A stretch of 64,000 nt of DNA from positions 2,691,478 through 2,755,477 of the forward strand of contig MU008158.1 of the NCBI GenBank assembly GCA_010909165.1, written 5' to 3'. This document shows, piece after piece, positions 1 through 40,142 of this stretch. This stretch comes from Anthoceros angustus (taxonomy: Eukaryota > Plantae > Anthocerotophyta). Position numbers and translations under genes: made by a program. Each line of letters opens with the position of its first letter. The stretch's first letter is position 1. The notes under the pieces were generated by a model. That model was given only the letters and a program-made list of their open reading frames with translations, was not told where the DNA came from and did no database searches.

Positions 1-1390
1 GCAACTTTGTTGCCTCGAACCTCTCCTCTTGCCTCTAGCATTTTGTGGAGGTCGACCTCCCACCGTCTTCGCAATGCAAAGGCAAAGGCCTTTCCAACCT
101 CGGTGGAGATGGATGACCTCAAAGGGATGCCATGCATCTTCAAGCTCCTTGCTTGTGAGAGTCCCTCGGTTTCCCATAAATGCACCAAATAGGTGCTAAG
201 ATAGCAGCCTTGGTCCTTCCTCATCCACAATTTGGCTTGAGGAGCTTCTCTCGATGGTGTATACGCTTCATACATGATAGTCCCCAATCGGCTTGGCTCC
301 CGAAATCTTCCACAAAAATTGGAGGAAGTTGGTGCTGAAATAAGAGTGCGTTGGTAATTTACCAACGGCACAATCTTTGCGAAGAGCCTCCACTTGACTC
401 CTTGATGCTCTCGGTCTTCCGGCCATTCTTGGCGTGGGCCTTCACTCCTCCATCCATCATGTAACTCTGCGGGATGTCGGGAGGCTGTCCTCTTCCTCCA
501 TTCAACCTTTCGAGGAGAGCAATTCGAGCTCTCTTCCTCCGGTCTTCCATACACTGTCGAATACTTCTCACGGTCCAGCGGGATCATCTAGCATTCCTTC
601 GGCGGCGGCTTGATTGATGGAGGTTGATGTAACACTCCTCAATCAATTCCAAATTGGTGTAGGCCCATTGGCGGCCATACACCCATCCTGTGGATGTTCT
701 CCTCCTCCGCCTTGAAATCAACCAAATCTCGGGGTTGGCTGACAAAGCAAGTGAATTGGGGCATCACAAGTTCACCTCCCACGGCGGCGCGCCCTCTTTC
801 TTTCTTCCTTTCCTCTCGCGAGGAGCCCTTGCAGGCGGCTCCTTCCCTTTTCCAGCTCGAGGCATGGCACCTTCCTTACTCCTGCTCTAGCAAGAGGATT
901 ACTTCCCAATTTCAGCGTTGTGTGCTCCAAACTTCCTCAACTCCTTTTCTTCGGTGACTCCGACACAGCACAAACACGTTAGCCACTGTCTTGAGCCTCC
1001 AGGCTGCTGCTTCTCCTTGATTTCTTCTCCAGGCCGGCAGGTGTCGATTTTCCTCCTTCTACTCTCTTTTCCCACCTTGCTTCCGGTGCTCAACTCCGCT
1101 CTGCGGTGGCTCCTTCAATGTGTCTCTTTTCCGGTTGAAGAGCTTCTTGGTGCCACGGCGTCTTCTTGCGCCTCCTCTTTCTTTTCCCGCTGGTCTTCTC
1201 CTTTCCTTGCCGCCTTCCTCTCGTGGGTGTGCAGCGGCATGGCGCTTCTCCTTCGCTTCTTTGCGCTCCGCTCCGGTCTCGATCTCTTGGGGCGAGTTCT
1301 TAGCTCGAAGGAAGTTACGCCCCAAAGCGCACTTTGCCCTTTGGATGGCGCCACACGGCCACACAACCCTAGATTTGTCATCATTCCAAA
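1..1390 (-). pseudogene. Degenerate, probably retroelement-associated ORF remnant
   Basis: Broken minus-strand ORFs rich in K/E/R (1059-1364, 1115-1384, 899-1093, 359-571). A manually read segment, NLELIEECYINL, resembles the LVxEFYANL motif of plant LTR-element accessory ORFs. No RT or integrase motif was seen. Confidence 0.3.
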
Positions 1391-3476
1391 ATCCTAATCT
1401 ATCTATAATACCTATTTTCCTACTCTAATTAATCTCACTAATATATTTATCCTATTGATGAGCATATATAGTGGATATCCCCTATTCTAATTTCCTTTTT
1501 GCGAGATTCGTCGACCTACCACGGTGATGCCTTGACCTACTGGTAGTGTGGCTCGGCGTGATACTGACCTACCGCCCTTGCCTTCTTCTCTCGGCCATTT
1601 CGACCCGTTTCTTTCCTCACGGGATATCCTTTTGCCTTCCTAATATCCTACAACTCCAGCTTCGATTCTTGAGAAAATTTCTGGCATGCTCCTCTTCAAT
1701 CGTTCCAAAAAAAATCAAACTTGTTTCTTGAACTCTTTTGGGTGGTTGCCCAAACTTTTCGTTCCACATTGCTGCGGTGGAGATCGTCTGAGTCATGGCA
1801 AACACGAGCCATCCACCGTCGTGGTACGGAAAAGCGAGTTTACGCGAAAATATTGCGAGATGCATATAGCGGGCGCAAATGTTCACTCAAGTATTTTGGT
1901 AGCATGGTGGTATTCGACCACTTCCATATCGGGAGGTTCATATCGCCGTCGGTCGGTGGCGAGGATCATCGGCGCTTCATCCTCCTTTGGTTGTCCGGTG
2001 ATTCAAGAGGAGAATGTATCGGATTTTGATGAGCGTGCCGCCGCGATCCATAATATGAGTACATGCCTCACGCTCTGGTTTGTGTTTTGCGGATGGCTTT
2101 CGGACCAAGCGGAGTAAAGTCTTTGAGCAGGGGCCATGGTTGAGAAAAGCAGGACGGGCCGGCGGTTATGACCCCAGAACATTGTCGCGGTCGGGACGAA
2201 GACCTCAAGACCCATAAGCGCGACAACTTTGACCCCGTGACACTACCTCGTAGAGCGAATCATTCAAAGTCCATACAAGCGGTATCGACATGATCGGAAA
2301 GATGTTCTGGAACACCTCTCCTTTTTGACATCGGACATGAATTGGCATGCAATAGCGTCCCGTTGGACATCGTATGTCGTACATCTTGGATGCGATCAAG
2401 TATAAAATCTTCTGTCTTGGTCTTTGTTTTGTTCAACGCGGTTTGTGGAGAAGGATGACCAAAGTCGTAATTTTTCTGCCTCGAAGACGAATGACTTCTC
2501 AGCTGACCCACGGCGTCAAGGGTATACTTGCGATCAGGACTTTTGACCGTGGCTTGAGGAAAGTGTGAGAGAGGAGGCATTGCGGGGTTGCGTAACAATG
2601 ATGGACACAAAGTGTTCCACAAAGTGTTACACGAATTTGCTTAGAAGGAATCATGTTGGTTCGAGCATATGCAGGTTAGATTGAACCAAGGATTGGGTGA
2701 GTAGGAGTGGAGTGCAGGGGCCGGGTTAAATCAGCCTTGGCCAGTCCGTCGATGCATCTCGGGGAAGCAGCCAAGCATTGCATTTCTGGGGAAGGAACTA
2801 GGTGCATCTGCGAGGCATGTAGTCAACCCAACAATGCTGATTAGCGCCCCATGATAACTTCTTCTTTGGGAAGCAACCCGTCTTCAAGAAGAGGCATCAA
2901 CAATGCTTCTTCAATGCCGTCAGCGGATGGGGATCAATACTGCCTCGGTTTCCGTCGGTGGCCGGTGGTGTCCATGATACTCTGGAGCCGGGCGTCCAGT
3001 TTCATGGCGGAGACTTGGTGAGCCACTTCCATTTACTCGAAGGTGATCGATCGGGTGTGAGGAGGGCGTCCGGGGCGAACACAGGACAGGGGCTGCGGAT
3101 GGCATTCTACCATGTGATGAGGACAAAGATGCGCGGTTGGAAATGAAGGTGGGAACCACGATAAATTTGCAAGGGGTGAATATACCGTTGGGGGTTGCGA
3201 CTTTTATCCTCAAGAGGTTGCACATGGGTGTAAAACATGCGTATCTGAGGATTTCCATAAAATTTAGCACCAAAACATGGTCTCCACCATTGGTTGCATG
3301 TCTTGGCATCGAACGTCGAAGGGTTTACGCATTCGAACTTTACACTTTCCTTTATAATCGGACCCATGTGGTGGACCATTCATGCCGGTGTTACGCGTTC
3401 TTCCTCCCCTTCAAGTAGGGTTCTAAGGGTGACCATGGACCTCACCTCCTGATGTGGTCCAAGATAGTAAATGGAA

Positions 3477-3524
3477 GGATTTGAGAGGAGGTGGGGGGCC
3501 CTTTCCCCACTCCTCTTCAAATCC
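3477..3524. repeat. GC-rich inverted repeat (hairpin)
   Basis: ggatttga-gaggag-gtgggg...ccccac-tcctc-ttcaaatcc; the arms are near-perfect reverse complements. Confidence 0.8.
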
Positions 3525-4949
3525 GAGTACACGATTGCAGCTCACATGCTCGCTCCCCACTTTTTTGAATGCTCCTCCCTCGTTACGGGCTTTGCAAGGG
3601 TTCTTTGGATAGCTTTATAAATGGAATGAGCATGACATGGATCTATCCCCAGCACGTTTAATTGACGGCCTTTCGCTAACAAGCGCCACCGACAACCGCA
3701 AGGTCATGCATTAACGCCTTTCCCTATCCATTAAAGTAAAACCAAGAATGGCGGGAAGTGCGGAATGTTGGAAGAACGCCGTCTTTACATGAACATAAAA
3801 GCTTGTATCTGTATGCACAAAAGAGAAAAACTCCAAAGGTGTGCCACGGAGGAACTCTATCAAAAATTCATTCGACCCCACGAGACTATGCAGGTAGTTT
3901 CCCTCAAACCAACACGTATTTAATCGCTCTCCGCACATTTTGGGTAAGTATGTTCTCTACCTATTACAGAAGCCCGTTTCTCTCGTGACAACCGTCCCCC
4001 CTCATCCACTCCAGTTACACTCACATGGAGGGAAGCCGAATTCGTACATCCTATTCGTCCCTTTCCTGCCCTATACACTCGGCGGCAGGTTCTATAAATC
4101 CTCGCAATTCATTTAACTTATCCCTGATAGCTTTTTTGTCCACGGCATACAAGTGTTTCCGTGACGTGAGGTTAAATCCGTAGTACAGTATTACCGTTTC
4201 GTTTACATATAGCTCCTGCATATTTTTGGGATATAAACCCTTGGGCCCTTTCTTACTCCCGTTCATGACCGGTTGGTGATTCCGCCCTCGTACTATGTAC
4301 TCTTCCACATACCGCCCTTCAAACGCATCTGTATGCTCGGTTCTATACCAATGGACGAGAAAGTGGGGACGTGGGGCACCTAGTCTGACATCGGCTACTC
4401 TCCCTATCCAAAAAGGTCTGTTGTGAGTGTCTGTGTGGCATGGTGTTGCGATGAACCATCCTTTCTTGATTTATTACATCCCCATTCGAGACGCGCCATT
4501 TCCCTTTGTTCGGCCTAGGTTTTGGTATGCTCCCAAATACATATCCCGTTGTGGTAGGTCCCTCATCAAAGCTTCCTCTAGCAATGCTTCGTCGAGAACA
4601 TGTGAGTGTCACTTCCACATCGATTCTGAATACCATTTCCATGGTTCTGCAAAATAACCCGATATTATTTTCCACAATGACAATCTCCTCTTGGTCCTTC
4701 CGAGCTTCCCACCGGTTATAGCTTCTCACCTCTGACCTCAAAGCGGCCCGGCTTTCAAATGAGCTACTCCTTGATTGGCCTTAAGACCGGATCCGCGCCT
4801 TCTTGTCCCTCGCAATGCCATCGCCGGTCTGCGATAATGGCATCAATGGGGAATTTCAGAACTCTAACCACGATTACATTTCCCAATGAGGCGTCAGTAA
4901 CTTGCTCTGGATTACCGTGACTAGCCCTCTGTCTTGTTTTTCCTCCGAG

Positions 4950-6560
4950 TTATCTTGGTGGTGTGGAGCGATAAATTGTTTAGTCTCCTTACCGCGCGAT
5001 ACATTTGCCGACCTTCCCCTCCGAATAGGCCACACATATGTCCGAAAATGCAACTTAGTCAGCGGTTTCAATTGGTGTGGGAGTGTACGCACCAACTAGA
5101 ATATGAGTCAACTCATCCAATGTGTGTGCTTCCTTGTGTTTCAATGTTTTAGAAACACGAAAAATCGATCAATCGATCATGTGTGTGCCCAACTAGTAGG
5201 AACCCCACCTTCACTTTCAAAGTCCCCATGTCCACAAGCATATTTAAATGCAAATAATAGCTGGTTCTTATTCTCCGGCATGTGTTGTCCAACGCAAGTA
5301 TAAAACTTTGGGCAAGACCCCGGTAACTATGTATAACATCTTGGATAACGCAATAGTCAAATTTGCGTCATTCAAGATTCGTAATGGAGGAAAATCACGG
5401 CTTTATGCGTGTAGTTGTGTATCAAGCACCCCACAACATGATGAAATTGCTTTCCTCTTCAAGGTTCTTGGGCCACCTCAAAAATGGGGTATTCTTTTCT
5501 TGGTCCATGCCATCAATGGAGGCAACATATACTTATGTGGTTCAACGTAGCTTTTCTGCGGTGTTTGCCATCTTTGAACGCTCTGCATATAGTCTCGATG
5601 CTTGTCGAGGCGGCTGGTACTTCCGCAAACAACATCGGATCGGATATTAGATTTTGGACTTTTCCGTCTTTAGAACCCCACCGCCACGAGACACGATCCA
5701 ATTTCATTGACATATTGTCCCGCTCTTGAAGACCACGAAGGATGGCCGCCTCTACATGAAGACATTTTGTTGGTCGCGGCCGCCGGCGGGCGGGGGGGGG
5801 GCGGGCGGCGGTGGCGCCGGAACATTATGCGGTGAGTACATCGGCCCACTCAAAGCCCACTTACGCGTCTAAAAGTAAGTCGCCACGTAAGGGATGTTGT
5901 CGCGTTTGCATACACTCAGTTCAATATCCTCCACCTGGCGCCGGCGGCCGCGCCCCTCTTTCCATTTCACTTGATCTAGAAGTGGAAAGTTTATTGCGAT
6001 TCAAGCGCACCTTGATCCTCTTTGGAGGTGGTATTCCGTATAGTTGCTTTCAAGCCGCGCACAGAGCACGTTGAAAACTGTTGGACTTGGTATCTTCACT
6101 CGGTGAAGTCGTTTTCCTGATTTAAACCATATGTTACACCGCCGCCCGATATGTCGCATTGTCTCTTGTGAGCCCATATCTCCAACCGTGTATGTGTCGG
6201 GAAGATTGAAGACCTCCACGTTCAGCCTTTACGCCATGCTCAAAAGCATTGTCCATCAAGCGATGGCCCCTCTGCGTGGGCGGTCTTACGTATGGGGTTG
6301 GCCTTCAAAGCGTCCCATGGTGCATTATGACCTGCTCTTTAGTTCCTCATACCTTTTGTGACCAATGCAATAAACTCTTCTAAATGCCCGTAAACAACAC
6401 TTGATCGCAGTGTGCCCATGACGCGACAACCACGCACGCCGCATTACCTCGTTGGACATGCATCGGGGTTTGAAATGTCTCTGTTCTTGCCTTCCCATGC
6501 GGAGGAAAGCGATAACGTTGCTCACGAAATTTTTCCTTCGTTAACTGTGCGACACATGTC
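4950..6560 (-). mobile_element. Frameshifted DDE transposase, DUF7869/Sola-like type
   Basis: Manual minus-strand translation gives, in order: CLRAFRRVYCIGHKRYEELK (about 6340-6400), LPDTYTVG, VKIPxxNxFxxCxxC (about 6060-6110), IDGMDQ (5500-5517), HVVGCLIH...NDANLTI, PKVLYLxLDNTCRENKN (about 5255-5315) and VKVGFLLVGHTHxxIDRFF (about 5160-5215). This is the characteristic three-acidic-residue motif set. There are many 1-nt frameshifts and a probable GC-rich intron at about 5770-5865. Confidence 0.75.
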
Positions 6561-7478
6561 ATTGCAACATGGTTTCCGAAACTCAGCCGCGATAACTGCC
6601 CCATCACTTTTCCTCAATGGCACACGACCTCTCCGGCGTCGGGACAAACCGAATCCGCGCTTCTAGGCGCAAGCGTTTCGCTCGACGGTTTCGCAACGAG
6701 CGTTAGCCAAGCTTCTGCACAGGAATATGGGAGGTGTCATGCTCTTCTTCTATAGTGCATATCCTGGTCTCCGTGGGCGGCGTGACTCCATCATTTGCAT
6801 TGAACAATCCGCGTCTAGCAAAGGAGACACAGGCGGATGCGACATCCGCTCCTCTTGTCTTCCGCTTCTTTTTGCGTGCAGAAGGGCTTCCTTCCATGGC
6901 AGCGTACAAATTAAGATTGCGAGGAGTATGCGAGCAGATCGTGGAAGAGCAGGTGATGGTGGTGGCCGCCGTAGCCGACGACATGGGTCAATGGTGGTGT
7001 CTGCACATTCGCGGGCATCCACTCTGTGACACAAACGCCCAAACAATCAAACATTCATTTAGGAATGCCATTCCCTTAGTCTCTTACCGTCAATGTGCAG
7101 ACGGCCTGAGTCCAATGTTGAGAGCACAAGAGCGTTTGCTACGGAAACCCGACTCCTAGTTCACTCGGGCATAGTCCGGTATTGTTCAACATGTCCCCTC
7201 TTACGCATCGTCCCCTTGCGTCGAACTCGGAGATCGAGATTGGTCTTCGCCTTCTTCATCGGGCGATCAAGGAAAGGAGGTCACCGGTATGAAAACAAGA
7301 AACGGAGGCGGTGGACTTTGCAAAGTCGTCAACACCTACTTCATCGTCGGAGTATGTATGCATGCTCTCCGAGATTCCGCCGGTGAGGGACTCGGAAAGC
7401 ACAGTGAAGCGGTCGCTTCTCCGCTTCATCCTCATCCCCCTAGTTCAAGCTGGGAGAGGTTAATCGAGGTCGCCTACT

Positions 7479-10322
7479 TATGCCGGACCGCAAGGCGGTA
7501 ATTACAGCCGCCCATTGAATGCATTCGCCGCCTCACGGTAGCCAAATCTATCGGATATCACATATACAATACAAACCGTTAGACACCGTGGCTTGATTGT
7601 GCCCTAAGTACGGATTAATGGTACAATCGAAGACATGGGAAACCCTAAACTATTCGAGTCGGTGTACATATTGATCCGAGATCGAACCGCCGTTCATGTT
7701 CGCGGCAGTTTACGTCCGGCGACTATCCGCTGGTTGGGCGTGTTCTTGCGCTTCCTCCCACATCCGGCGGTGAATTCAAGCGCTTTCCTTCATCCTTTGC
7801 ACGCGAAGAGGTTCGCGATTATCCACCTTCACGCTATTCCATTTCGCCTCTGCTGACCTCGGTATGTATTGTGGTTTCGCGAGGAGGCAATGGCGATGGG
7901 AAGGCGAAGCAAGAAAGGCGGTGGCGTCTGATCCGCCTGCGAACCAAGAAAGGAAGGCGGCGAAGCTCAAGGCGGGAGGAGCCGAGTGACCTGGGATTGC
8001 CGCTCCCAATTCCGCTCCTGCCCGGTTGCGCCGCCTGTCGGGAGGTCCGGTGGTCGGTCATGGCGGCGCACGCGCGCTGTGAGCCACCGTGCAGGAAGGC
8101 AAGCACGACAAGAGGAGATGGCGGAGGTGAGCGTTGGCACGAAGAAGAAGTCTGCCTCCTATCCAATCTCCTTACTATGAAGATACAATGCACATCAAGC
8201 GTATTTACGGCTTGACCAATTGAGGTTAGGAGAAGGATTGGATCTTTGATGCGAGGAAGAATCGGAAAACGATGGCACCATGTGACGCCGCTATACAAGT
8301 GGGTTATGGGGTATAAGCATGCCATGCCGAATCAAAGAGCGAGGCGGGTTATTTGGGCAACCTTGGATATGTCAAGAGGAGAGCTGAAGGCCACATCATG
8401 TGTGTGACGAACGAGTTCGATACATTGCCACGGAGGTGGACATGTATAAGATGTTTCACGTGAGCTTCAATGGTCTTGTTATAAAAATGTGAGCCATCCA
8501 ATGGTTCAAGTGTTTGAGATTGCGAGGCGAGCAGTAAGGATTCGGACTTTAGCGAATGCGTGTTTATCTTCATCGAGCAATGTTCACGCATAACTTTTGT
8601 TTTCTAATCTTACATTACTGTTTCCCAGTGCCCAAGTAGGAAGAGCTTTCATTGTTACGTGTGCGGAGATCACCGCGATCTGTCGGAGCAGGAGGGTTAT
8701 GACCGTAAGGCAGACGCCTCACCAAGATGTTGAGGATGACCCACCCAGCCATGAAGGGAGTGAATTGGGTCCGAAGATGAGGATGATGGGCGATTCCGGA
8801 TGTTCTTGGTCATTCGGATGATGAGTTGGAAGAGTCCGATGCAGGAGAGCAAAGAGATGCGGACATATTGTTGATTGTTATGCACACCGACCGCAAGGCA
8901 AGAATTGCAACGGCCGCCCATTGAATGCATTCCGCCACACCGCCAAATCTACGGATATCCTGGCATACTAATACAAACCGTTAGACACCGTGGCTTGATT
9001 GTGCCCTAAGTACACGGATTAATGGTACAATACGTGAAGACATGGGAAACCCTAAACTATTCTGAGTCAAGGTGTACATATTGATCCGAGACTGAACCGC
9101 CGTTCACCGTTCGCGAGCGCAGGTTTACGTCCGAGCGACTATCCGCCTGGTTGGAGCGTGTTCTCGCTGTTGCGCTTCCTCCCCACATCCCGCAGTGAAT
9201 TCCGAAGGCGCTTTCCTTCATCCTTTGCACGCGCAGAAGAGGTTCGCGATTATCCACCTTCACGCTATTCCATGCCTCGCTGACCGACTCACCTGTATTG
9301 TGGTTTCGCGCAGGAGGCAATGGCGATGGGAAGGCAAGCAAGAAAGGCGAGGTGAGCGACGGCCTCGATGCCGATCCGCCTGCGTAAACCAAGAAAGGAA
9401 GCAGAAGAAGCCTCAAGCCGGGGAGGAGCCGCACCATGCCAGAGGATTGCCCGCCTCCCACCTGGGCCTCGTTGCGCCCGCCTCAAAGAATCGTGGAGGT
9501 CCGGTGGTCGGTCATGGCGGCGGCACGCGCTGGAGCCACACGTGGAAGGCAAGCACGACAAGAGGAGATGGCGGAGGTGAGCAGTTGAAGAAGTCGTACT
9601 GCCTCTATCCAATCTCCTTACTATGAAGATACAATGCACATCAAACGATCGGCCCAATTGAGGTTAGGAGAAGGATTGATGTCAGGAGGAAGAATCGAAA
9701 ACGATGGCACCATGTGGGCCGCTATACAAGTGGGTTATGGGGTATAAGCATGCCATGCCGAATCAAAGAGCCGAGCGGTCATTATTTGGGCAACCTTGGA
9801 TATGTCAAGAGGAGAGCAAGGCTACATATGTGTTAAACCGAACGAAGTTCGATACATTGCCACGGAGGTGGACATGTATAAGATGTTTCACGTGAGCTTC
9901 AATGGTCTTGTTATAAAAATGTGAGCCATCCAGTGGTTCAAGTGTTTCGAGATTGCGTACAGAGCGAGGTGATTCGGACTTTAGCGAATGCAAGGTTTTA
10001 TCTTCATCGAGCAATGTTCACGCATAACTTTTGTTTTCTAATCTTCCGCTCGCTTTCCCAGCCGCCCAAGTAGGAAGAGCATCTGCCTGCGGAGATCACA
10101 TACCGCGGGCCGGAGAGGGGTTATGACCGTAAGACGGAGCACTGCTCACCACCAAGATGTTGAGGATGACCCACCCAGCCATGAAGGGAGTGAATTGGGT
10201 CCAGAAGATGAGGATGATGGGCCGATTCCGGATGTTCTTGGTCATTCGGATGATGAGTTGGAAGAGTCCGATGCAGAGGGAGAGCAAAGAGATGCGGACA
10301 TATTGTTTGACTACGATATGCC
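7479..10322. repeat. Tandem duplication, two copies of about 1.4 kb
   Basis: gaccgcaaggc...gccgcccattgaatgcattc...aatacaaaccgttagacaccgtggcttgattgtgccctaagtac starts at 7486 and again at 8889. The copies stay collinear to gacatattgtt (about 8865 and 10300) and differ mainly by small indels. Confidence 0.9.
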
Positions 10323-12830
10323 TGGGCAGTCCATGGAGGTCCCCACAGCCCGGTATGATCCGCAATCAGGAGGAGGGCGCCGGCCGGCCGGCGCCCTCCA
10401 GCGAGAGAGGTGCCAGACTGGTCACGCCGAATCAGGCGGTTTGTCCAGTTCGAATGCATCGATTGGGTTGGGGCGCCGGCCGGCGCCGGCCTCAACAGGC
10501 GGGCCAGCTGAGGCTGCCCTGAGCGAGGATGGGGGCGCCGGCCGGCGCCCTCCAGCGATTGTCTTGGGAAGCGGAGTCACAGTCCACGGATCCGGTGGGG
10601 TCATTCGGGGGCAGGGAAAACCGAGACGGGAAGAGGAGGAAAGGCGGAAAGTCGCTGGCGATGGAGGGTGTCTTGAAATCCGGACGGTTCATGTCGCGGA
10701 CGAGGAGAGGAAGGCGCTATCCGGGGAGGACCCGGCACGCATCGGGAATCGCTACGCCAAGAAGGTGGTGCAGGCAGTTCTCGTGAAATTGGAGAATTTC
10801 GTCTGCGTCGCACACTGGCGCTCAAATAAGAAGGGTGGACGAAGCATGGACAAACTATTTGGCACGGGTGATCTCGAAGGGCGAATTGAAGAGGGGTTTT
10901 ACCTGCTGTGCATGATAGATCCGACGGAATGCCCGATCTCGCCACTCGTGGAAGAAATTGGGGCAAAGACATATGTCATGGGTGTCTGGTGGGAACCACA
11001 TATGCAGCCATGAAACATTTGGCGAGATCTCCACGGGAAAAACGCTTCCAATATGTGGAGGCACATGTGTGTGGCCTCACGAGGAGATGAGAGTCCTGTG
11101 GATCACAATATTATGTCGGACAAGCGGAAGATGTCTTTTATAGAGCAAGTCGGTACCTCGGGGATGAATTGTTGATTGCAGCGAAGGGGTTCAGATGGCG
11201 ATGACTTGGAAATTCAACTTATACAAGGTTCGGACTTATTGAGGATGATGAGGCCCGTACGACGATGTATACAAACAAAACAAGGTGGACAACAGGACTC
11301 ATATCTTATGCATAGCGGAGGGCAAAGTCCGGGAGAATGTAGACAAGATCTTCTCAAAGTGGGAAGGCGGTGACTGCCAGGCGAAGAGGCAAGCAGTGGG
11401 CACAAACAAGAAGGGAAAAGGAAAGCGAGGGTTGGAAGAGTCAAGAAAGTGGATGCAACGTATGTAAAGCCGAAGACATGTTAGAAGCCACAAGTCGCTC
11501 AAGGTATTCCAATGGTGATTGTGGCGATTCTCATATCCGCGACGAGAAGGTTTTGGCCGGCCTTATAGATTTGAAAGGGATGGATGACGAAATTACCTTG
11601 CGAAAAAATTCCACATCATCCAAGTTGCTATGGCCAAACACTTGGGATGCTCATCGTTCGAGGAAGTCCGCTAGAATATCCTTATCACTCTCGTGAAATG
11701 CTTGCGCGGTTTGAGACTCAATTCGCGGAAAGGTACGGTTGTCTCGGTTGTTATGTGTTTTCCTACGCTTGGTATGCATGTGTGGGAGTGGGAAGGGTAG
11801 GCGGGGAGGCGGCCGGCCCCTTCCTTCCCACTTCCCACACATGAGTAGGCGGTCACCACCTTCTCAACCCCTCCCTTGGGCTGTGGAGAAGGGTGGCGGC
11901 CGGCCGGCCGCTGCCAACGTGGGACCTTCGGTTCTAATGCCTTTTGTGTTCAATGGCAGAATCAAGGATGTGGACAACCTCACAAAATTACGGACGATTT
12001 CCAACATTTTATCTTGAAGTGAACAATTGGAAGGGGCTTGAAAATGAGCAAAGAGATTTGGCGGACAAAGATCCGAAGCCGGGCTTTTCAGATTCAATGT
12101 CCCCGACATAACGAGTTCGATATCAAGTCGAAAGCGTAATGTCCCGGATATGCGGGGTTATTTGAGAGGACGAAACTATGCCCATTGATCATGGATGTCC
12201 CCGAGGTTTTGATATAGGATCTATGGACAAAAGGATGGACATCACAAGTATGAGTCTGATGTTCGAGCTTCAGAAAACTACATGCGAGGAGTTCCGGATT
12301 ATCGTTATGCATGGTGTGGAGGAAGCGCTACGGTGAGAGTCTCTAAGGAAGTGGTGCGAGAGGAGGTATGGTATCATTTGTATGGACAAGACAAACATGA
12401 GCAATGACAAAGGAGGGTTTGAAACCGTGGAGTACGTGATGGGGTGGTGTCTGAAGGACGGGTGTTCCAAGGATAGGGCCACGATGATGCCGAATGCCAT
12501 GGATGGCATGTTTAACAATGGGAGGACGGTCATAGCATATGACACTGTGGTGAAAAAGCAGGTTTACCTGTCTAATGACAAGCTAGTGGTATGCCCGTAC
12601 CAAAGGCCGCTGGGCCTTATGATGAAGCTCATAAAAACATTTTCGAAGGAAGGGGACTGGGTGCTTGATGCATGCTCTTGGAGCGGAACGACCATTTTAG
12701 CGCCTTGCTTTGTGGACGTCACTGTATCGCCATCGAGGCGGACTTGAGGTGTGCAGGCTATATTCCGCAACGCATCCATGGGCACGAGGTCCCCGCGCAA
12801 AAGAAGAGCTCACTTTGAGCCTCATCGGAG
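10123..12830 (+). pseudogene. ParB/Srx-like domain plus beta-class N4/N6 DNA methyltransferase, paralogue A (frameshifted as assembled)
   Basis: ORF 10123-11013 leads into YVMGxGGNH (10988-10999), then across frameshifts YAAMKHLA...GLT.EEMRVL..DHNIMSDKRKMSFIEQV. Next come LIMDVP(R)G (12194-12207), DKTN...ETVEYVM, CPYQRPLGLMMKLIKTFSKEGDWVLDACSWSGTT (12592-12693) and, after a frameshift, ALLCGRHCIAIEAD. A probable intron lies at about 11732-11958. Confidence 0.75.
11777..11843. repeat. Inverted repeat inside a probable intron of paralogue A
   Basis: catgtgtgggagtgggaagg...ccttcccacttcccacacatg; arms of about 20 bp. Confidence 0.8.
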
Positions 12831-13469
12831 GCCCCTCCGATTTTGGGCGAAGGAAGTATGCATCGGTGAGAAGGATGGTTTAAAGGCTCGGTGGTTCCCT
12901 CACCGCGAAAAGAATGATGAGGACAACTAGAGAGCTCTTAGGCGTGGGACAGCGGACTTTGAATCTTTGTTTGGGAGCAATCTGCTGGGGGAGTCGAAGG
13001 TGAGCAGGCAGTGCAGCCGAGCCACGAAAATAGCAGTTCGAGGAGGAGATGGAACGATTGCGCAATGTTGCGGTGGTTATGGATTCGATGTCGGCTCGGT
13101 AGCCGGATGAGTCGCAGTGAGCCCACCTCATATTCCTCCGATTTAGAGTAGGTAGGTTGAAAGTATAGGTCCTACTTAGGAGGGATCACATTTTTTGTTG
13201 TATGTAAATGACCGTGGTTGGGACATTGAAGTCAATGGCTTGGAAGTTGAGATAGACGTAACAGGGGGCCGGCCGGCCAGCGCCCTAACAGAACAATGAA
13301 CTGGAAACTATGTTGTATGCATGTCGCGTCCCACTGTATGAACTTCTGAATTTCCCCGCTATTTTCAATATAACGTCAGAAGGCGGTTTCCGAATGGGGC
13401 TGCATTCGTGCAAGAGGGTCCGACCCCAATCGAAGAGGGTTTGTATATTCACCCCCTTGCAAATTTATC

Positions 13470-16400
13470 GTGTTTGGGTCGGAAGAGGAGGAGAACTTGA
13501 AGAAGAGGCGATGGCGAGATGACCTCGGGATATTATCACAATGCGTGATGGTTCTAGCGGTCTTGAGGCTGTTGGATCGCGAGGAGGGTGCGAGAGAGGC
13601 CTTCACGATTAGAAATGTGAAGAAAGGGGAAGAGGAGAGGCCTGCAGATGGCAAACACATTCCGGGAAAAGGGCGGCTGATAGCGAAAGCCAAGAAACCT
13701 GTGGCAAGACGGAGAAGCCTCGGAATTGTGGAGGAGGAGGAGGAAGAGGATCCACCGCCAAGGTTTGTGGAGAGAGCTAAGGACGGCAGCATGTCGCCAT
13801 CGATGATAGGCTCAGCCGCCATAAAAGCGTATGCAAGTCGGGACGTCGAAAGGGACGGTATTGCTATCAAGAGAGTCTGGGAGTCTACCTTGAAGTTGCC
13901 AATCAAGTCTGAGACCCCAGAAGATCTTTGTGAGGCTAAGGTGAGGAAGTGGATCTCGCGTGGGTAGAGGCTTTGATGCGAAGATGAAACACGCCCATGG
14001 GTAGGTGGTGTCAATGGTTGTGGTTGTCGACCCTCGTGTCCTCACAAAGAGAACTTTGACGCGTTGAGAAGGTGGACGAGGGCTTTACAATTTCTTCGTC
14101 TTGGGAGGGAACCATTCCTTCCGTGCAAGGTCCGCTTTCGATCTACCCAATGAAGGAAGAGTTCAAGTGGATGGATGCATATGTGCTAGCTGGACTCGAG
14201 GGGCGAGATGAGGATCGTAGCCACAGACCACAACACCATCGCAGATGAAGACATTCACCTTCATGGAGTGCGTTACATCGAGTGAGTTGATGTGCGGGAG
14301 GCGAAGGGCTTGAAGTGCGATGTAGGGAAGGCTGGATGTATATGCCCGCCTAGGCGGGATCCCCAAGTGGGATGCGCAGCATGGCCCCAAGGTTCGATAT
14401 CACCGGTGGACAACAGGACACTTGATTCTGCGTGGCGAAGGTTGATGAAGAAGTGTGGAGGTATGTGGGCGAGATATTTGAGAAGTGGGAATGTGGCGAT
14501 TGCACGAACAAATAGATGCGGCCCGAGCCCTAGCGCCAAACAAACAAAGGCCGAGGAAGACAAGGCCATGCTGTAGAGACCTTGTAGTCATAGAGGTTAA
14601 AGATGCGGATGTGCGGTGAGAGTGTGGAAGTGCTTTCAAGGGATTGAACATTATGGCAACAACAATTTGAAGACAAGATGCATGAAGGTCTTGTCTGGGA
14701 AATGAGTTTACGGCAAATGCGAGATTGGGTGGAGAAAGCCAAAAAGCGAACCTCATTCACGCGTCACACTTGCGAAGAACGAATTGCGAGCGTTTGAGCG
14801 GGTTAGGAGCGGTATCCTCAATCTGACCGTGGACGGATCGGCAACTTCCAACCGGCTTTCAAAAATATGGTAAGTGTGAACCCGAGCAAGTATGGAATGT
14901 CCACACCGGACGGCCGGTGCTTGTGATATGTTTGATTTCTAAGTATGCTGGTGGGCATCCGATTTGTTTTCGGGCGCCGAGCTTGCCCATGTACACTCCC
15001 ATATGCCCATGAACACTCATGGTTGATGGTTTTGCCTTGGTGCGTGAGCCAATGCTTGCCTAACGTGGAGTGCACTCCGAGAGTTTCAAGGAACATGTGT
15101 TGAAGGCCAAAGCATGGAAGATTATGGCGGATGAGCGGCGATTCTTTGGAGACCTCCATCCGATAAGTTGAAGACGATCAGAGATGCTTCCGGGAGATCC
15201 TGCAAGATAGGAATAATTTGTGGTAACATCGTGAGAATGGCTCAGTTTGTGGAACCCCGTCCGTTTGCCCTGTTCCTATTGGACTTGCCACGAGGGTTGC
15301 ATCTGGATGCTAACTCCAAGGAGTATGACACGCGATTCAGCCGCGATGAGTTTGAAAATATCATATTGCAATTCCAGGGCATCACGACATCGAGGTATTT
15401 GCGTCGTGGTATTTCATTCCCGGATGACATGTCCATGGTACGGAGGTTTTGCTTGCGCTTGTAAAGGAGTGTCACTTGCTTCCGCACAAAACTAATGTGA
15501 AAGCGGTTGCAATGTATGTGATCACGGGATTATATCACCACAGGGGCTGGATCGTTGAAGCAAGATTGTGTGCCACAGCATTTCTCCCTCAGTGCAGCTT
15601 CAACTGTTATGAATGATGGCACAGGGTTGACAACCTTGCTTTGAGGAGAAGGTTGTGGAACCCCGTCCGTTTGCCCTGTTCCTATTGGACTTGCCACGAG
15701 GGTTGCATCGGATGCCAACTCAAGGAGTATGACACGATTCACGCGATGAGTTTGAAAATATCATATTGCAATTCCAGGCATCACGACATCGAGGTATTTC
15801 GTCGTGGTATTTCATTCCCCAGATGACATGTCCATGGTACAGGAGGTTTTGCTTGCAGCTTGTAAAGGGAGTGTCACTTCGTGCTTCTGGCACAAAACTA
15901 ATGTGAAAGCGGTTGCAACAGACAAGCTGTATGATGCGAGGATTATATCACCACAGGGGCTGGATCGTTGAAGCAGGATTGTGTGCCACAGCATTTCTCA
16001 CTCACTGCAGCTTCAACTGTTATGAATGATGGCACAGGGTTGACAACCTGCTTTGAGGAGAAGGCTGTGGAACATAAGCTGTGTTATAACACAGCAGATG
16101 ATAGGGTAGTTTCCCCATACCAGAAGCCTATCAGGTTGTTGAGGAAGTTGATGGAGCTGTACACAGTGGAAGGCGAGTGGGTCCTGGATGGGTGTGCAGG
16201 CTCTGGATCAGGTATGGTAGCCGCTCTCAAGTGCGGACGCAACGTGATATCGTGAGACGTAGATCCCAGAGCAGCTCAATTCATGGACCTCCGTCTCAAT
16301 ACTTTAGAGAACTGGCCAAGCGAGGAGGAAGAGTTGGGAGAGGTTGAAGGCTACGCGGGGCCTAAGACGTTCACCAAAGAACCGATGATGAACAATGTGG
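13470..16400 (+). pseudogene. ParB/Srx-like domain plus beta-class N4/N6 DNA methyltransferase, paralogue B (frameshifted as assembled)
   Basis: An acidic/basic ORF (13470-13967) is followed by FFVLGGNHSFRAR (GGNH 14104-14115) and AYVLAGLE..EMRIVATDHNTIAD.KTFTFMECV. Then come FALFLLDLPRG (15282-15296, duplicated at 15688-15702), SCFWHKTN and SPYQKPIRLLRKLMELYTVEGEWVLDGCAGSGSGMVAALKCGRNVIS (16112-16252). A TGA at 16253-16255 is followed by in-frame DVDPRAAQFMDLRL. Confidence 0.8.
15248..16073. repeat. Internal tandem duplication of about 406 bp in the MTase B domain
   Basis: tgtggaaccccgtccgtttgccctgttcctattggacttgccacgaggg occurs at 15248 and 15654. The 8-bp microhomology tgtggaac recurs at 16066-16073 at the end of unit 2. 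Confidence 0.9.
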
Positions 16401-18442
16401 CAAGGGAGAGGCTTTTGGATCTCAAGCGCCACGCAATCGGAAGCATTCTACACCCGAGGTGTGAGATCCTTCCATGTCTTGTCTTTGTGGGCGGTGTGGC
16501 GGCGATTCGATTGACAAAGGTAATAGGGAGCACAGGGCTATGTGGCGAGTTTGGGCACAGGAACATAGTGCTCTGACTCTCGGGCGGCGATGGACAAGGT
16601 CACCTTCCCTTGGACACGACCACTAAGGACTATGATCCATTGGTTCACTCCCCTACCATGGATAGGCTGCACAGCCCGGAAAAACCTGGGGCATATGAAC
16701 CTAATGTTTGTGAATCTCAGTGACTGCTGGGTGGGGCGATTGGTAATGCCCGCAAATCTGTTCGGTGTTCGACTCCAGCATCGTTGGTGACGTATGGAGA
16801 GGTGTCCGCTTACCTGGTGAGCACAAACACCGGACAACCGGTGTTGAGGCTGGATCAGAGCTGTCTTTGTCCGGTTGTGTCCTGGTGATGACCGTCAACC
16901 CGAGTGCATGTTCTCGTGTGCTTGTTTTCAAGCTGGTATGAAAGCATACGCTTTTGCACTTTGTTCTTTCTCGCATTGGATGTTGAGGCATGAAATTATC
17001 ATAGCGGGCCCATGATCAGCCTTGCAATAAGAACCACGCCCTTCGCCATAACGTAAAATAGCCAGCGCATTGTCAAACTCCTCCCACATTCCGCGTATTG
17101 TCATCATGGCGTTTACAAACTACCAGCAGCACTGGCTGCTACCTGATGGCTATACGCACTGAAGCATTGAGCATGTCCGATGACATAACCATCAGTCTGT
17201 ATTCGCGGATATGTCATACCGGCAGCTCGCCTGTCACGCATGCAGAACATTGTAGCCGATGAGGTTAGGCCAATGGGCATGGATTATGTCGGTTAGCAGG
17301 TGAGGTTCAGAAATGACGTTCAACACATCCAAACGTTGGTGCCTCAGGGGGACTTTCGAGAGCACGCTGGAGAATGCAAGCCGCACGGCCTCCGTACTTT
17401 CATGTCATGTTTCGCAACATAGATATGACTGCCACTATCCAGGGCAACCCAACACTTGACTTGCGCTGGAGTCGAAGTTCACCGATGAAGCCGCGTTCAC
17501 CGGATATCCACGGTCATAGAATTACAGTGATGCGGCATCCACCATTTTTTGTTTACCGTTCATACATGCAACCCTTCAAACCGTTTATGTCGTCATTTTG
17601 AAATTCATGATGTCCATATGACTACATGGCTTGTTACATATGGTTTCCATCTTCGAATGTAACCATTTTGTGGTGGGTAATTAGAGGATTGTGTTACCTT
17701 AAAAAAACCATACAGTAAAACCTCAAAAACATGGTTTCATTCTTCACTTGGACTTTCACACTTAAGGTTTTGGCCAAAGTTTTGAAAACGTGACAAAGCA
17801 CGGTTTTCCATCGACAAACCCCAAATTTCACACCCTCAAAAGTGACAACAAGGTCTTAGGAGACCTTGTTAGACCTATCTATGGCCGAAGGATGCGTGCG
17901 CAGCGTATGACTTGCATAATCACGATTTTCAACACCGGTTCAAAATAACAAGGAGAAAATCGGAAGGGCGTGGTATGCTAAGATGTAAGGAGTTTTCAAG
18001 TTCGATCCTTTGGTCAGGGGAGGTGGTGTGCACTATTACGTTCGGTGCCACCACGGGTGATTGTGGCGACTCCATTGTTGCCGTTGGTCCCATCACATGC
18101 CCAAGGTAAAGGAAAGGGACATGCAAAGCGGAAGGATGCCCCGATGTCCGTGTCAATGACGATAGTCTCCAAAGCGATGGCGCTAGTGGCGGGTGTAGTG
18201 GCGGAGTCCATGAAGTAAAAGCGGGCCTAGAGCACCGGCGACATATGAATGTGGAGCAACTATCATGGTGGGATCGTTACGGGATGAGCAGTGTAATGGC
18301 AGAGACTAGCGGTGGCATTCCATTCCGTTGGAGCAGAATGGTCTTGGTACACTCGCGATGAAAGCGAGGTACCACTGTAGACCCTCCGGACTCAACTTTG
18401 GTTGATCCCGCAATGGCCGACGGATTTTTGGACATGGTCGGA

Positions 18443-21110
18443 GGTGTACGAGGCACATGTCAGTGCGGAGGGAGGGCAAGGCGAGGCTCGGTCGGAGGTT
18501 GTGTGAAGGAGATTGAGGAGGGAATGATGGTTGTTGTCCAAGCCGGGATGATCGAGGACCATTACGGCTCGCAAAAGTGGTGGAGGTGGACCATGATCTT
18601 TGGGGTCCCTTTCATGATAGTTCATTGGTGGCGGACGAGAACAATGATGCATTCGAGGAAGGTACATGGAGGAGTTTGTGATCTGGCGCCCACGGTCGAG
18701 GGAAAAAGTGCGGCGATCAAAGAATGGAGGCGGGCGTCGGGAGAAGCATTTGCAAAGCCTCAACTTCCGAGACAAATGTGCTGGCCTATGATTTCACAAT
18801 GACAAGGAACAAGGCGTTGCGAGGGCGACAATGAAGGCGATAAAGACCAAAGTCTTTGAGTTGCGTCGAGCCGGTGATGAGCCGAGACCACTTGACACGA
18901 ATGCTCGTGGAAAGATTCTTGACACCTCGACATCATGGATGGAAGTCCCGGTGTGGTAATGTCCGAGCATGATGACGGACTAAGAAAACGAGGATCGAGC
19001 AATATTGTCAACTAATTTTGTAACAATGTTATGTGTCCTTGGATGGTTTTCGTTTCGTAATGGCATCTGTCATCTATGTTAGAAATGTAGTGTGGCGAGC
19101 ATGATAGCGGGATGGTCACGATCGCGGGATGTCCTAAATATGTATCGTGGCGTGCGCCGAGTCTTTTCACTTGGGTTCGTATGTTCGCATTCAGTGGCAA
19201 GGACTCGGCGGAGATATCACAACAAGCGATGTCGGGATGTTGGGAGGCGGTGTGGAAGCGGCTAGGCGGGACGCCCCTAATGACTATGGGGTGGAGCAGG
19301 GAGGGAGTCGATCTCGGTGTGGATTCGAGAGCAGGATGCAGGCGTAAAGCGGTGTACACAGGGCACATCGAAGTGCGGAGGGAGGGCAAGGCGAGGCTCG
19401 GTCGAGGTTGTGTGAAGGAGATTGAGGAGGGAATGATGGTTGTTGTCCAAGCCGGGATGATCGAGGACCATTACGGCTCGCAAAAGTGGTGGAGGTGGAC
19501 CATGATCTTTGGGGTCCCTTTCATGATAGTTCATTGGTGGCGGCGGAGAACAATGATGCATTCGAGGAAGGTACATGGAGGAGTTTGTGATCTGGCGCCC
19601 ACGGTCGAGGGAAAAAGTGCGGCGATCAAAGAATGGAGGCGGGCGTCGGGAGAAGCATTTGCAAAGCCTCAACTTCCGAGACAAATGTGCTGGCCTATGA
19701 TTTCACAATGACAAGGAACAAGGCGTTGCGAGGGCGACAATGAAGGCGATAAAGACCAAAGTCTTTGAGTTGCGTCGAGCCGGTGATGAGCCGAGACCAC
19801 TTGACACGAATGCTCGTGGAAAGATTCTTGACACCTCGACATCATGGATGGAAGTCCCGGTGTGGTAATGTCCGAGCATGATGACGGACTAAGAAAACGA
19901 GGATCGAGCAATATTGTCAACTAATTTTGTAACAATGTTATGTGTCCTTGGATGGTTTTCGTTTCGTAATGGCATCTGTCATCTATGTTAGAAATGTAGT
20001 GTGGCGAGCATGATAGCGGGATGGTCACGATCGCGGGATGTCCTAAATATGTATCGTGGCGTGCGCCGAGTCTTTTCACTTGGGTTCGTATGTTCGCATT
20101 CAGTGGCAAGGACTCGGCGGGAGATATCACAACAAGCGATGTCGGGATGTTGGGAGGCGGTGTGGAAGCGGCTAGGCGGGACGCCCCTAATGACTATGGG
20201 GTGGAGCAGGGAGGGGAGTCGATCTCGGTGTGGATTCGAGAGCAGGATGCAGGCGTAAAGCGGTGTACACGGGCACATCGGGCGTGAGGAGGGCAAGGCG
20301 GCAGCCGAGGTGGTTGTGTGAAGGAGATTGAGGAGGGAATGATGGTTGTCCAAGCCGGGATGATCCAGAGGGCGCACCATTCGCTCGCAAAAGTGGTGGA
20401 GGTGGACCATGGTCCCTTTCATGATAGTTCATTGGTGATGAGAACAATGATGCATTCGAGGAAGGTACATGGAGGAGTTTGGATACAAGCGCCCACCGTC
20501 GTGGGAAAAAGTGCGATCAAAGAATGGAGGCAGAGGGCGCCGTGGAGAAGCATTTGCAAAGCCTCAACTTCCCAGACAAATGTGCTGGCCTATGATTTTG
20601 TGACAAGGAACAAGACATTGCAGAGGAGACAATGAAGTGATAAAGACCAAAGTCTTTGAGTTGCGTTGAGCGCTGAGTGCGAGCTTCCCACAGAATGACA
20701 CGGATTGTTTTCATCTTTTCGTGAAAGACACCATCGGCATCATTTCGCTAGGTTGACGTGATAATGTCCAGAGTATGCAACGGCGATTATAAGAAAACCG
20801 GATCCCAGAATGGTGCTCTAATTTTGTAACAATGTTCGTGGTTTTGTCCTTGAGAGTAGCAGCGAGGTTTCAATGGTGACCATGCTGGTCATCTATGTTC
20901 GAGCTTGTAGTGTGGAAGTGTCCAGGATGGCCGCCACGTGGATGTCCAAAGGTATGTATGCCGCAGCAAGTGCGCCAATGTCTTTTTTCACTTGCCGCAT
21001 GTTCCGACCCGCAAGGACTTGCGGAGATATCAACCAACAACCGACAGGATGTTGGGAGGCGGAAGGCGGAAATGGAGCGTGGACCGCCTAATGACTATGG
21101 GGTGGAACGA
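18443..21110. repeat. Tandem array, three copies of about 910 bp
   Basis: ggagggcaaggcg starts at 18471, 19381 and 20288. Copies 1 and 2 are near-identical and give identical ORFs (18760-19011 and 19669-19920). Copy 3 is more diverged. Confidence 0.9.
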
Positions 21111-30179: not shown

Positions 30180-31720
30180 CCAAGTGCAGAGATTAGTGTC
30201 ACACGACATCACATCTCTCATCAAAACACTAGTCTTGTAATAAACACCAGTTGTCAAATCTATAAATAACAAAATTGGCATCCTGTGTGCAACCCCTTAG
30301 CACGAATGTCGCAGACTGCGCTCTACCCTCCCTCTCCGCTATCCCACCCCTTGCAAACCATATCTCGCACCATGGCTACTCTACTGCCTCCTCGGACCAC
30401 CGCCCACCTTACGCTCGGCTGATGGCACTTGCATTGCGCAACACGAGCATGAGGTCAGCACCGATCGGCATCCTTTGTCATGATGCTCACCAGGAGAGCC
30501 TCCATTGTAGCCTCCAAATATATTAGGGTTAGATCCCGGTATGTAATCGGGTTCCTCCTCCGCCATTCCATTCCCCATTCTCGTAAACTCATGTCGCCAT
30601 CAAGAAAGAAACCTCGAGGTCACACTCGATTGCGCCTCTTACAAACCATATATATGTTGTTGAGCTTCTCCATCAATGAGTTTTTAGGGGTGCTCGATGC
30701 TGTAAACGCTTGGAACGAGATACCATCATCTCTTGGAGGCCCCTTGTTGCAATGAGAACGCGATATGCTCTAACTCCATTGTAATCTTTGCCCTCTCTTC
30801 CTCACTGCAACTCCGCTTTTGTAACCTTCTTATCAGTCAACATTTTCTCTCCAAATCCCATGTACCGCCATCTTTGAAAATCCGATTCGTTTACATGATT
30901 TTCCTCCATGGGCGGACACACGGGCTCCATCGGCCATTCCAAGTGCAGAGATTAGTGTCACCGACATCACATCTCTCATCAAAACACTAGTCTTGTAATA
31001 AACACCAGTTGTCAAATCTATAAATAACAAAATTGGCATCCTGTGTGCAACCCCTTAGCACGAATGTCGCAGACTGCGCTCTACCCTCCCTCTCCGCTAT
31101 CCCACCCCTTGCAAACCATATCTCGCACCATGGCTACTCTACTGCCTCCTCGGACCACCGCCCACCTTACGTTCGACAGATGGCACTTGCAGATTGCGCA
31201 ACACGAGCATGAGGCCGCACTGACTGGCATCCTTTGTCATGATGCTCACCAGTAGAGCCTCCATTGTAGCCTCCAAATATATTAGGGTTAGATCCCCGGT
31301 GCTATGTAACTGGGTTCCTCCTCCTGTCGCCATTCCATTCCCCATTCTCGTAAACTCATGTCAGCGCCATCGCGAAAGAAACCTCGAGGTCACACTCGAT
31401 TGCGCCCCTCCCCTCTTACAAACCCATATATATGTTGTTGAGCTTCTCCATCAATGAGTTTTTAGGGGTGCTCGATGCTGTAAACGCTTGGAACGAGATA
31501 CCATCATCTCTTGGAGGCCCCTTGTTGCAATGAGAACGCGATATGCTCTAACTCCATTGTAATCTTTGCCCTCTCTTCCTCACTGCAACTCCGCTTTTGT
31601 AACCTTCTTATCAGTCAACATTTTCTCTCCAAATCCCATGTACCGCCATCTTTGAAAATCCGATTCGTTTACATGATTTTCCTCCATGGGCGGACACACG
31701 GGCTCCATCGGCCATTCCAA
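30180..31720. repeat. Tandem duplication of about 760-780 bp, probably within an LTR-element remnant
   Basis: ccaagtgcagagattagtgtca occurs at 30180 and 30939, and ccaag recurs at 31717. The MEAPCCNEN ORFs at 30733 and 31511 are identical over most of their shared length. Confidence 0.9.
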
Positions 31721-32104
31721 GCAGGCAGACCACATCCTCCCGGAGGTTTCTCCCTATCGCAGATCTCTGCAGGGTCCTCATCTTCGTCCTCCGCTTACGC
31801 CATTCTGTCCTTGTGGTTGGAGCTCAACTCCACTATTGCCATCTTTTTTGTAGTCTTAGACGCATGCCAATATCATTTCAAATCTTAAATATGCATGGAC
31901 AACATGGCAGTATCACAACTTACCTTCCGCCCAATATTCCTTTTGTACAAGCACCAGCTCGTGCGGCTGTTACTATGTTCCTACCCTCCGCTTGGAGTGT
32001 GCTCCGCCATTTGGAGGGGCGCATTCTCCTTGACCTCGGCTGTCGGAGCGCTTGGTTGCACCTCTCGTCCTTCGCTGCAGCCTCTGCGCTCTAACCTTCG
32101 CTGT

Positions 32105-39805: not shown

Positions 39806-40085
39806 CGGCGTCGCCAAGGCAGTTTTGCCTCTCCGCTACACTCTGCTGCGCACGCAATTGGAGTTCACCAACATTCCATCAGCAGGCTTTCGCAATTCCC
39901 ATTGGCAGCGACAAATTCGGTTGGGGTTTGCACCGGACCGGCCACACACATGCATGGCACAGACATACATGCATTGCGACGGGACGCATGCAGAGGGCTT
40001 GTGACGGATGGACGCGACGGATGGGCGGCGTTTCGCTTGAGAGGGAGTGTAGTGAGGAGCTTGCGCTCGGGGAGCAGTGACTCGA

Positions 40086-40130
40086 GGCAGAGGCAGAGGC
40101 AGAGGCAGAGGCACACGGAGAAGCAGAGGC
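40086..40130. repeat. (GGCAGA)n simple repeat in the 5' region of the protamine-like gene
   Basis: ggcagaggcagaggcagaggcagaggca...gcagaggca. Confidence 0.8.
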
Positions 40131-40142
40131 AGGGAGCAGAGA

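Follow-up and report, generated by a model that had tools for sequence, protein, structure and literature searches.

Two broken copies of a ParB-like/methyltransferase gene

The window, a stretch of 64,000 nucleotides from contig MU008158.1 of Anthoceros angustus (assembly GCA_010909165.1, positions 2,691,478 to 2,755,477), carries two neighbouring, co-oriented sequences, copy 1 and copy 2, in which a ParB-like region is joined to an amino-methyltransferase region of the prokaryotic type; a first-pass annotation had seen in them a tandem pair of plant genes. Both copies are broken, and the part of the window that holds them is very probably a small nest of dead Sola1-type DNA transposons (transposase of the DUF7869 type), the two copies being relics of an accessory gene of these elements (Table 1).

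The motifs first noticed in the two copies are borne out, in place and in order, by three-frame translation: GGNH is read at 10988 in copy 1 and at 14104 in copy 2, DVPRG at 12194 and LDLPRG at 15282, PYQRP at 12595 and PYQKP at 16115, and WVLDACSWSG at 12658 and WVLDGCAGSG at 16178, each of the last two being followed by CGR..I..[E*]D. The order is the same in both copies (10093-12896 and ~13707-16475), and the series D[VL]PRG, KTN, PYQ[RK]P and VLD.C..SG, corresponding to motif IV, target region, motif X and motif I, is the beta-class permutation of the amino-methyltransferases. The motif signal is far above chance, but there are no open reading frames carrying it. DVPRG of copy 1 becomes legible only if the frame is shifted within four consecutive C (~12199-12202), the GL..EMR....DHN block of the same copy is distributed over three frames within ~30 nt, and copy 2 has a stop codon (16253-16255) instead of the E of its [ED].D motif. 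Of the "genes" originally proposed, the motifs and the family membership thus stand, while the motifs can be joined only by switching reading frames.

Profiles of family members, run over all six frames of the window, match at copy 1 and copy 2 and nowhere else. The methyltransferase pieces score with expectation values (E) of 2.2e-21 and 2e-07 in copy 1 and of 3.7e-14, 2.1e-16 and 1.6e-35 in copy 2; the ParB-like pieces of copy 2 (E 3e-4, 0.055 and 0.016) are collinear with the profile, yet each has a frame of its own, all three within 220 nt, and the ParB-like part of copy 1 is visible solely by frameshift-aware alignment (SWVSGGNH, CGLTR, VDHN). The anticipated match to the Pfam family N6_N4_Mtase (PF01555) is found as well, copy 2 reaching 32.9 bits, above the cut-off of 26.7, and copy 1 staying slightly below it at 26.5 bits.

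Decay of the two copies

Both proteins were rebuilt with our own frameshift-aware protein-to-DNA alignment, with the accessory gene of a related contig (L003, from run SRR33208241) as the guide. Copy 1 shares 257 of 741 residues with this gene over 9-27 frameshifts and 1-4 stops, and copy 2 shares 351 of 709 over 14-28 frameshifts and 1-4 stops, the ranges of frameshifts reflecting the choice of frameshift penalty; the reconstruction is thus collinear with the L003 gene in both cases and, in both, strewn with frameshifts and stops. Under the identical method two relatives called intact, L001 and L002, need 1-2 frameshifts. L001 is apparently intact, but ended by the contig boundary; L003 itself is slightly damaged, with a frame change between WHK and TNV (5892-5895) and loss of the W-I/V-L before motif I (~6240). 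In the conserved parts of the window copies no open frame exceeds 136 residues, as against single open reading frames (ORFs) of 446-488 residues in the intact relatives; the 296-residue ORF of copy 1 is limited to its non-conserved N-terminal tail.

In most of the frame changes the frames overlap by 1-2 nt, so that short introns are rejected as their cause. Base-calling errors in homopolymers are made improbable by the mixed contexts of the changes and by the clean host genes; the assembly is not generally error-ridden, because the ORFs of the neighbouring PLD gene (634 and 182 residues) are clean. Furthermore, a paralogous contig from a public DNA run is two letters shorter at 14060 and one letter shorter at 14134, the exact sites of called frameshifts of copy 2. 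At roughly one small indel per 100-200 bp in both copies and in the adjacent transposase relic, with stops and local duplications besides, neither accessory-gene copy, nor this relic, can be expected to make a protein. The claim of a pair maintained as a duplicated module does not survive the many frameshifts and stops in both copies. A larger gap, at one protein position common to copy 1, copy 2, L001 and L003, starts with GTAAGT in copy 2 and with GTACG in copy 1 and L003; it is a conserved spliceosomal intron, of which the family has at least one.

Motif I reads VLDACSWSGTT in copy 1, with its first glycine substituted, and VLDGCAGSGSG in copy 2. Within the ParB-like core, the copies retain Y, GG.H, A, L, P, GL, E and HN; the R that is invariant in the family is present in copy 2 only, copy 1 having M in its place. 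The 0.4-kb internal duplication of copy 2 repeats motif IV (LDLPRG) together with the target-recognition part.

Element A and the transposon nest

Copy 1 lies on the plus strand of a well-delimited element, element A, head to head with a transposase relic on the minus strand. The two arms of its terminal inverted repeat (TIR) differ by one base and one single-base gap, and the 20-nt core of the repeat occurs at these two sites only in the window, against 0.01 expected. With these TIRs and a target-site duplication (TSD) of 4 bp, TGGG, element A has the ends expected of a Sola1-type transposon; Bao et al. are said to have given 4 bp, in 2009, as the length of the Sola1 duplication. Frameshift-aware alignment of the transposase relic (4099-5508) finds 194 of 475 residues (41%) identical to the L003 protein over ~25 frame changes, with recognisable blocks such as VLPKVLYLRLDNT and VGFLLVGHTHDRID. 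The L003 contig offers the less damaged version of this layout, in which the gene of a 619-residue DUF7869 protein (168.5 bits on PF25273) and the accessory gene face each other head to head.

Downstream of element A, the recognisable coding sequence of copy 2 starts ~230 bp from the element's right end. The two copies are only ~35% identical in protein sequence and show no DNA-level similarity; copy 2 is closer to foreign copies, at 50-60% protein identity (~50% to the L003 gene). Going by these pairwise identities, on which the split into subfamilies was made, copy 1 and copy 2 appear to belong to different subfamilies and to be adjacent through transposon insertion and not through tandem gene duplication, because the subfamilies differ and copy 1 sits in an element bounded by its own TIRs and TSD. 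The "tandem pair" thus dissolves into one transposon that landed, with copy 1 inside it, beside copy 2.

Further transposon remains lie nearby. The 1.4-kb duplication inside element A takes in ~180 nt at the start of copy 1 together with the sequence upstream of it, and a 909-bp tandem repeat (18443-20671) has triplicated part of a third transposon fragment (17873-19835). Counting the internal duplication of copy 2, four local tandem duplications occur within 25 kb (7486-10307, 15244-16073, 18443-20671 and 30180-31721; units of 1.4 kb, 0.41 kb, 0.91 kb three times and 0.76 kb, 85-96% identical), making this an unusually duplication-prone neighbourhood. The transposon remains also have a CpG observed/expected ratio (0.96 in 3154-13474, 0.80 in 13479-16475 and 1.05 in 17873-19835) higher than that outside them (0.63 in the PLD gene, 25172-27645, and 0.69 in the rest, 28000-64000). 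This excess is opposite to the expectation from long-term deamination of 5-methylcytosine in silenced transposons, and GC palindromes within element A account for part of it only.

The family is repeated elsewhere. In a public DNA run of no more than 98 million letters, there are short contigs that resemble the conserved coding cores of both copies at 90-99% (window positions 12250-12650, 14050-14250 and 15050-15850), and some of them keep the reading frame at places at which the window copy is out of frame. Since their word depth is 15-70 in so small a run, the family is taken to be multicopy, or highly repeated, in the organism of that run.

Table 1. Coordinates of the transposon remains and their parts in the 64-kb window.
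Feature	Position	Strand	Remarks
Element A, decayed 10.3-kb Sola1-like DNA transposon	3154-13474		inverted pair; L003-like layout
Left TSD, TGGG	3150-3153		read directly; matches 13475-13478
Left TIR, 32 nt, AACCACGATAAATTTGCAAGGGG-TGAATATAC	3154-3185	+	pairs with 13443-13474
DUF7869 (Sola1-type) transposase relic	4099-5508	-	residues 1-498 of L003 protein; tblastn E 3e-13
Tandem duplication inside element A, 1.4 kb	7486-10307 (7486-8872 / 8889-10307)	+	85% identical
Copy 1, ParB-like/methyltransferase pseudogene	10093-12896	+	collinear with L003 gene; family profile E 2.2e-21
Copy 1, acidic N-terminal part	starts at ATG 10123	+	
GC palindrome cluster, one family	10372-10550		perfect 28-nt 10372-10399; 10472-10491; 10533-10550
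Copy 1, ParB-like core	~10903-11171	+	
Copy 1, conserved intron	11731-12111	+	
Copy 1, methyltransferase part	12182-12896	+	
Right TIR of element A, 32 nt	13443-13474	-	
Right TSD, TGGG	13475-13478		
Copy 2, ParB-like/methyltransferase pseudogene, other subfamily	13707-16475	+	L003 alignment; family profile E 1.6e-35; Pfam 32.9 bits
Copy 2, ParB-like core	14077-14282	+	
Copy 2, conserved intron	14903-15236	+	5' site ATG|GTAAGT
Copy 2, methyltransferase part	15237-16393	+	
Copy 2, internal tandem duplication	15244-16073 (15244-15661 / 15650-16073)	+	halves 92% identical
Copy 2, in-frame stop right after motif I	16253-16255	+	in place of a V-D/E-x-D motif residue of relatives
Third transposon fragment, DUF7869 C-terminal half (residues ~168-520)	17873-19835	+	tblastn E 4e-09; alignment

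Protein family, predicted fold and motif IV

A profile of the two methyltransferase pieces, scanned against 1.84 billion protein representatives, gave 2622 matches at E<=0.001 and 16 at E<=1e-10, while a word-based homologue search with P0002 gave three proteins only. The nearest relatives are eukaryotic and have the PYQKP signature ahead of motif I; they comprise Chara braunii GBG66685.1 (CBR_g66820), Ginkgo biloba Gb_37443, Gb_10123 and Gb_03516, and contigs L001-L004 of run SRR33208241, so that the expectation of related proteins in databases proved right. Full-length members are ~650-790 residues long and consist of an N-terminal core (GG.H...AR..L...P...GL..E....HN), a helical middle and a methyltransferase domain, the last reaching 33-66 bits on Pfam N6_N4_Mtase.

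The family profile matches the solved beta-class enzymes DpnA (5hek), M.MboIIA (1g60), CcrM (6pbd), M.RsrI (1eg2), an N4C methyltransferase and M.PvuII (1boo), with E-values from 1.8e-10 to 2e-08. Both window copies have the glycine-rich motif I that binds S-adenosylmethionine. Neither has the catalytic motif IV of the form (D/N/S)PP(Y/F/W); aligned with DPPYN of M.MboIIA by the family profile is DLPRG, and the motif reads D-V-P-R-G in copy 1, D-L-P-R-G in copy 2, DLPRG in the nearest intact contigs, DIPHG in Ginkgo and DFPYG in Chara. The two accessory-gene subfamilies of the window thus have the non-canonical D-[VL]-P-R-G in common, and catalysis in these subfamilies appears doubtful. The proposed writer of N4-methylcytosine (4mC) or N6-methyladenine (6mA) fails here on two counts: nothing at this locus is translatable, and even the intact relatives have D-L-P-R-G instead of (D/N/S)PP(Y/F/W).

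The ParB-like domain is recognised by its predicted fold. No Pfam ParB family matches the window pieces or the relatives; the nearest Pfam signal is DUF6551, below the cut-off, in 4 of 8 family members (best E 0.0027), and the N-terminal domain profile has 0 matches among PDB sequences. The AlphaFold model of residues 161-311 of a family member (P0154; predicted local distance difference test score 86.4), made on this relative and not on the broken window copies, matches ParB 7bnk (E 8e-4, template modelling score 0.49), Noc, PadC, KorB and sulfiredoxin (Srx; 7lj1, 6ky4), with a probability of 1.00 each. A ParB/Srx-fold domain is thereby supported for the family, on the strength of the model, and the ParB/Srx assignment made at first sight holds at the level of predicted structure, for the relative's model, and not at that of significant Pfam or PDB sequence matches. 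The signature motif of Srx is GGCHR, and the family has GG(C/S/N)H in its place; a helix-turn-helix or dimerisation domain of ParB was not identified in the family. Profile and predicted fold together uphold the central proposal that the family joins a ParB/Srx-fold domain to a prokaryotic-type, beta-class N6_N4 amino-methyltransferase.

Interpretation and alternatives

Elements of this family possess two genes. One encodes the transposase; the other, the accessory gene, contains an intron and lies on the opposite strand, and its product consists of an acidic N-terminal tail, a ParB/Srx-fold domain, a helical middle and a beta-class N6/N4 methyltransferase fold. The supposed "plant genes" would then not be host genes, each being the accessory gene of a DUF7869/Sola1-type DNA transposon. 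Element A, complete but decayed, would have inserted just upstream of the recognisable coding part of copy 2, and copy 2 would be the accessory gene of an older element, or of one of a different subfamily, the rest of which is gone.

Several points weigh against this interpretation. The search of the window for inverted pairs and repeats found neither TIRs nor a target duplication for the element of copy 2, and the fragment at 17873-19835 lies on the same strand as copy 2, contrary to the head-to-head layout. The Sola1 label is provisional, combining the DUF7869 match, the 4-bp duplication and the layout published for Ectocarpus. The frameshift counts depend on the penalty and have no fixed exact values, and a local assembly error may, formally, be the source of the breaks. 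Besides, the transposase belonging to the element of copy 2, sought in the sequence before element A (1-3153) and after copy 2, yielded noise-level alignments only, and the literature search found no paper on DUF7869, thus no published equation of DUF7869 with Sola1.

Three other explanations have been weighed. The assembly-error argument in its full form, in which the transposon genes are intact or nearly so and the frameshifts stem from local errors of assembly or polishing in a repeated region, draws on the fact that most calls are single-base losses, several of them beside short runs of the same base, that repeats are hardest to polish, and that the paralogous contig is in frame at two sites. 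This contig is, however, another copy, 90-99% alike, and not this locus; the host genes of the window have long clean ORFs, the transposase of element A is as broken as its accessory gene, and stops, heavy substitution and duplications of 0.4 and 1.4 kb, whose halves have diverged to 92% and 85% identity, speak of age. Such errors are therefore a very unlikely cause of the damage as a whole. That the copies should be two functional paralogues maintained by the host, ParB-methyltransferase fusions writing 4mC or 6mA, perhaps in sperm, is hardly credible: the ordered motifs are kept in both copies and the position of the intron is conserved, yet the frames of the conserved parts do not exceed 136 residues where intact relatives have 446-488, the 9-28 frame changes per copy are mostly overlaps of 1-2 nt that introns do not explain, a stop at 16253 falls within the conserved block past motif I, and copy 1 is enclosed, together with a dead transposase, in a transposon bounded by TIRs and TSD.

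A further alternative would be that of formerly domesticated genes which lost their function recently and are unrelated to the adjacent transposon remains. No element ends are found around copy 2, and the window is otherwise gene-rich, with a PLD gene, a glutaredoxin/DUF547 gene and an H1-like gene; against this stand the position of copy 1 between terminal repeats, with a transposase and an L003-like layout, the multicopy nature of the family and the presence of two subfamilies, which independent insertions explain more simply. We regard domestication as highly improbable. The nest of dead Sola1-type transposons thus remains the preferred explanation, and it carries a correction: what had been taken for a maintained plant pair of 4mC/6mA writers is transposon wreckage, which gives no evidence for a host amino-methylation pathway.

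This raises the question as to what the accessory protein does in living elements. Element A contains a family of GC palindromes, clustered near the start of copy 1 and found again at 11896-11911 and 13263-13286, with the core GGGCGCCGGCCGGCGCCC; the word GCCGGCCGGC occurs six times, always within 10379-13277, against 0.03 expected, and palindromes of this family are absent from the window outside element A. Three of them fall within the N-terminal coding tail of copy 1 and translate there into GRRPAGA-like peptides. The accessory protein may bind to these palindromes or use them as targets; alternatively, they may be small insertions. A ParB fold and an amino-methyltransferase fold riding on an element with palindromes of its own suggest a protein that binds and marks the DNA of that element; in living copies, the ParB-like domain would bind this DNA, and the methyltransferase part would either mark it or do no more than hold it. 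In its most explicit version, which we consider unlikely, the living family would be a self-marking transposon system of land plants, the ParB fold loading on the GC palindromes (GGGCGCCGGCCGGCGCCC) and the D-L-P-R-G methyltransferase fold modifying or clamping the element's DNA so as to time transposition or escape silencing. If this were true, such elements could have been a source of eukaryotic amino-methyltransferase genes.

Outside the nest, the phospholipase D (PLD) gene (25172-27645, minus strand) is apparently intact, with C2, PLDc and PLD_C domains; the best named plant PLDs are those of Diphasiastrum (69%) and Marchantia (65%). A basic H1-like ORF (39805-40643) has a weak Linker_histone match (E 7e-4), would be a sperm-type gene and lies ~25 kb from the transposon nest, no link to which was seen.

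Comparison with known systems

Rotifer N4CMT is a prokaryote-derived amino-methyltransferase residing in a eukaryote. The Marchantia proteins MpDN4MT1a/b (Mp6g18330/18340) form a tandem pair that is functional, expressed in sperm and provided with TSPPY, the form found in 4mC enzymes, as motif IV (bioRxiv 10.1101/2021.02.12.428880); the paper describing them mentions a ParB domain 0 times. Compared by description and not by sequence, the window copies resemble them as eukaryotic amino-methyltransferases derived from prokaryotes, and differ in being dead, borne by a transposon and equipped with D[VL]PRG instead of TSPPY. The kinship with MpDN4MT1 and N4CMT originally drawn thus holds in that all are prokaryote-derived amino-methyltransferases and goes no further, the family lacking the TSPPY of MpDN4MT1.

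Among prokaryotes, ParB has an old association with amino-methyltransferases, known from phage ParB-methyltransferase loci (Iyer et al. 2016, PMC4738411). The beta-class enzymes of bacteria and phages have the fold family and the IV, X, I order in common with the family described here; by contrast, this family is eukaryotic, contains introns and is carried by a eukaryotic transposon, and the PP-aromatic core of its motif IV is lost. With the CTP-switch N-domains of ParB, Noc and KorB and with sulfiredoxin, the likeness lies in the predicted fold, without a match at the sequence level. The relatives in Chara, Ginkgo and run SRR33208241 are far closer, as they have PYQKP, SGSG in motif I and the ParB-like core GG.H...AR..L...P...GL..E....HN; their frames are long and open, whereas the window copies are frameshifted throughout.

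The nearest described system is the Sola1-1_Ec32 transposon of Ectocarpus, whose accessory gene, opposite to the transposase, encodes ParB-like and N4C/N6A methyltransferase domains (Dinatale et al., Genome Biol 2025, PMC12477816); its authors likewise propose that the accessory protein binds and marks the element's own DNA. A transposon accessory gene of the ParB-plus-methyltransferase kind is therefore already published, for the Ectocarpus Sola1 element in 2025 and, as similar proteins, earlier for algal transposons. Element A has the same layout of two genes on opposite strands. It differs in size, Sola1-1_Ec32 being 21.5 kb long with a protein of 1104 residues as compared with ~10 kb and ~700-930 residues here, in its host, a land plant with genes for flagellate sperm, in the D-L/V-P-R-G form of motif IV and in that both copies are dead. 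Sola1-type elements with a ParB-methyltransferase gene are known from algae, and the window adds one land-plant example of them, well delimited by its TIRs and TSD; the role of the accessory protein for the transposon is a question of general interest, and one for an intact copy rather than for this locus.

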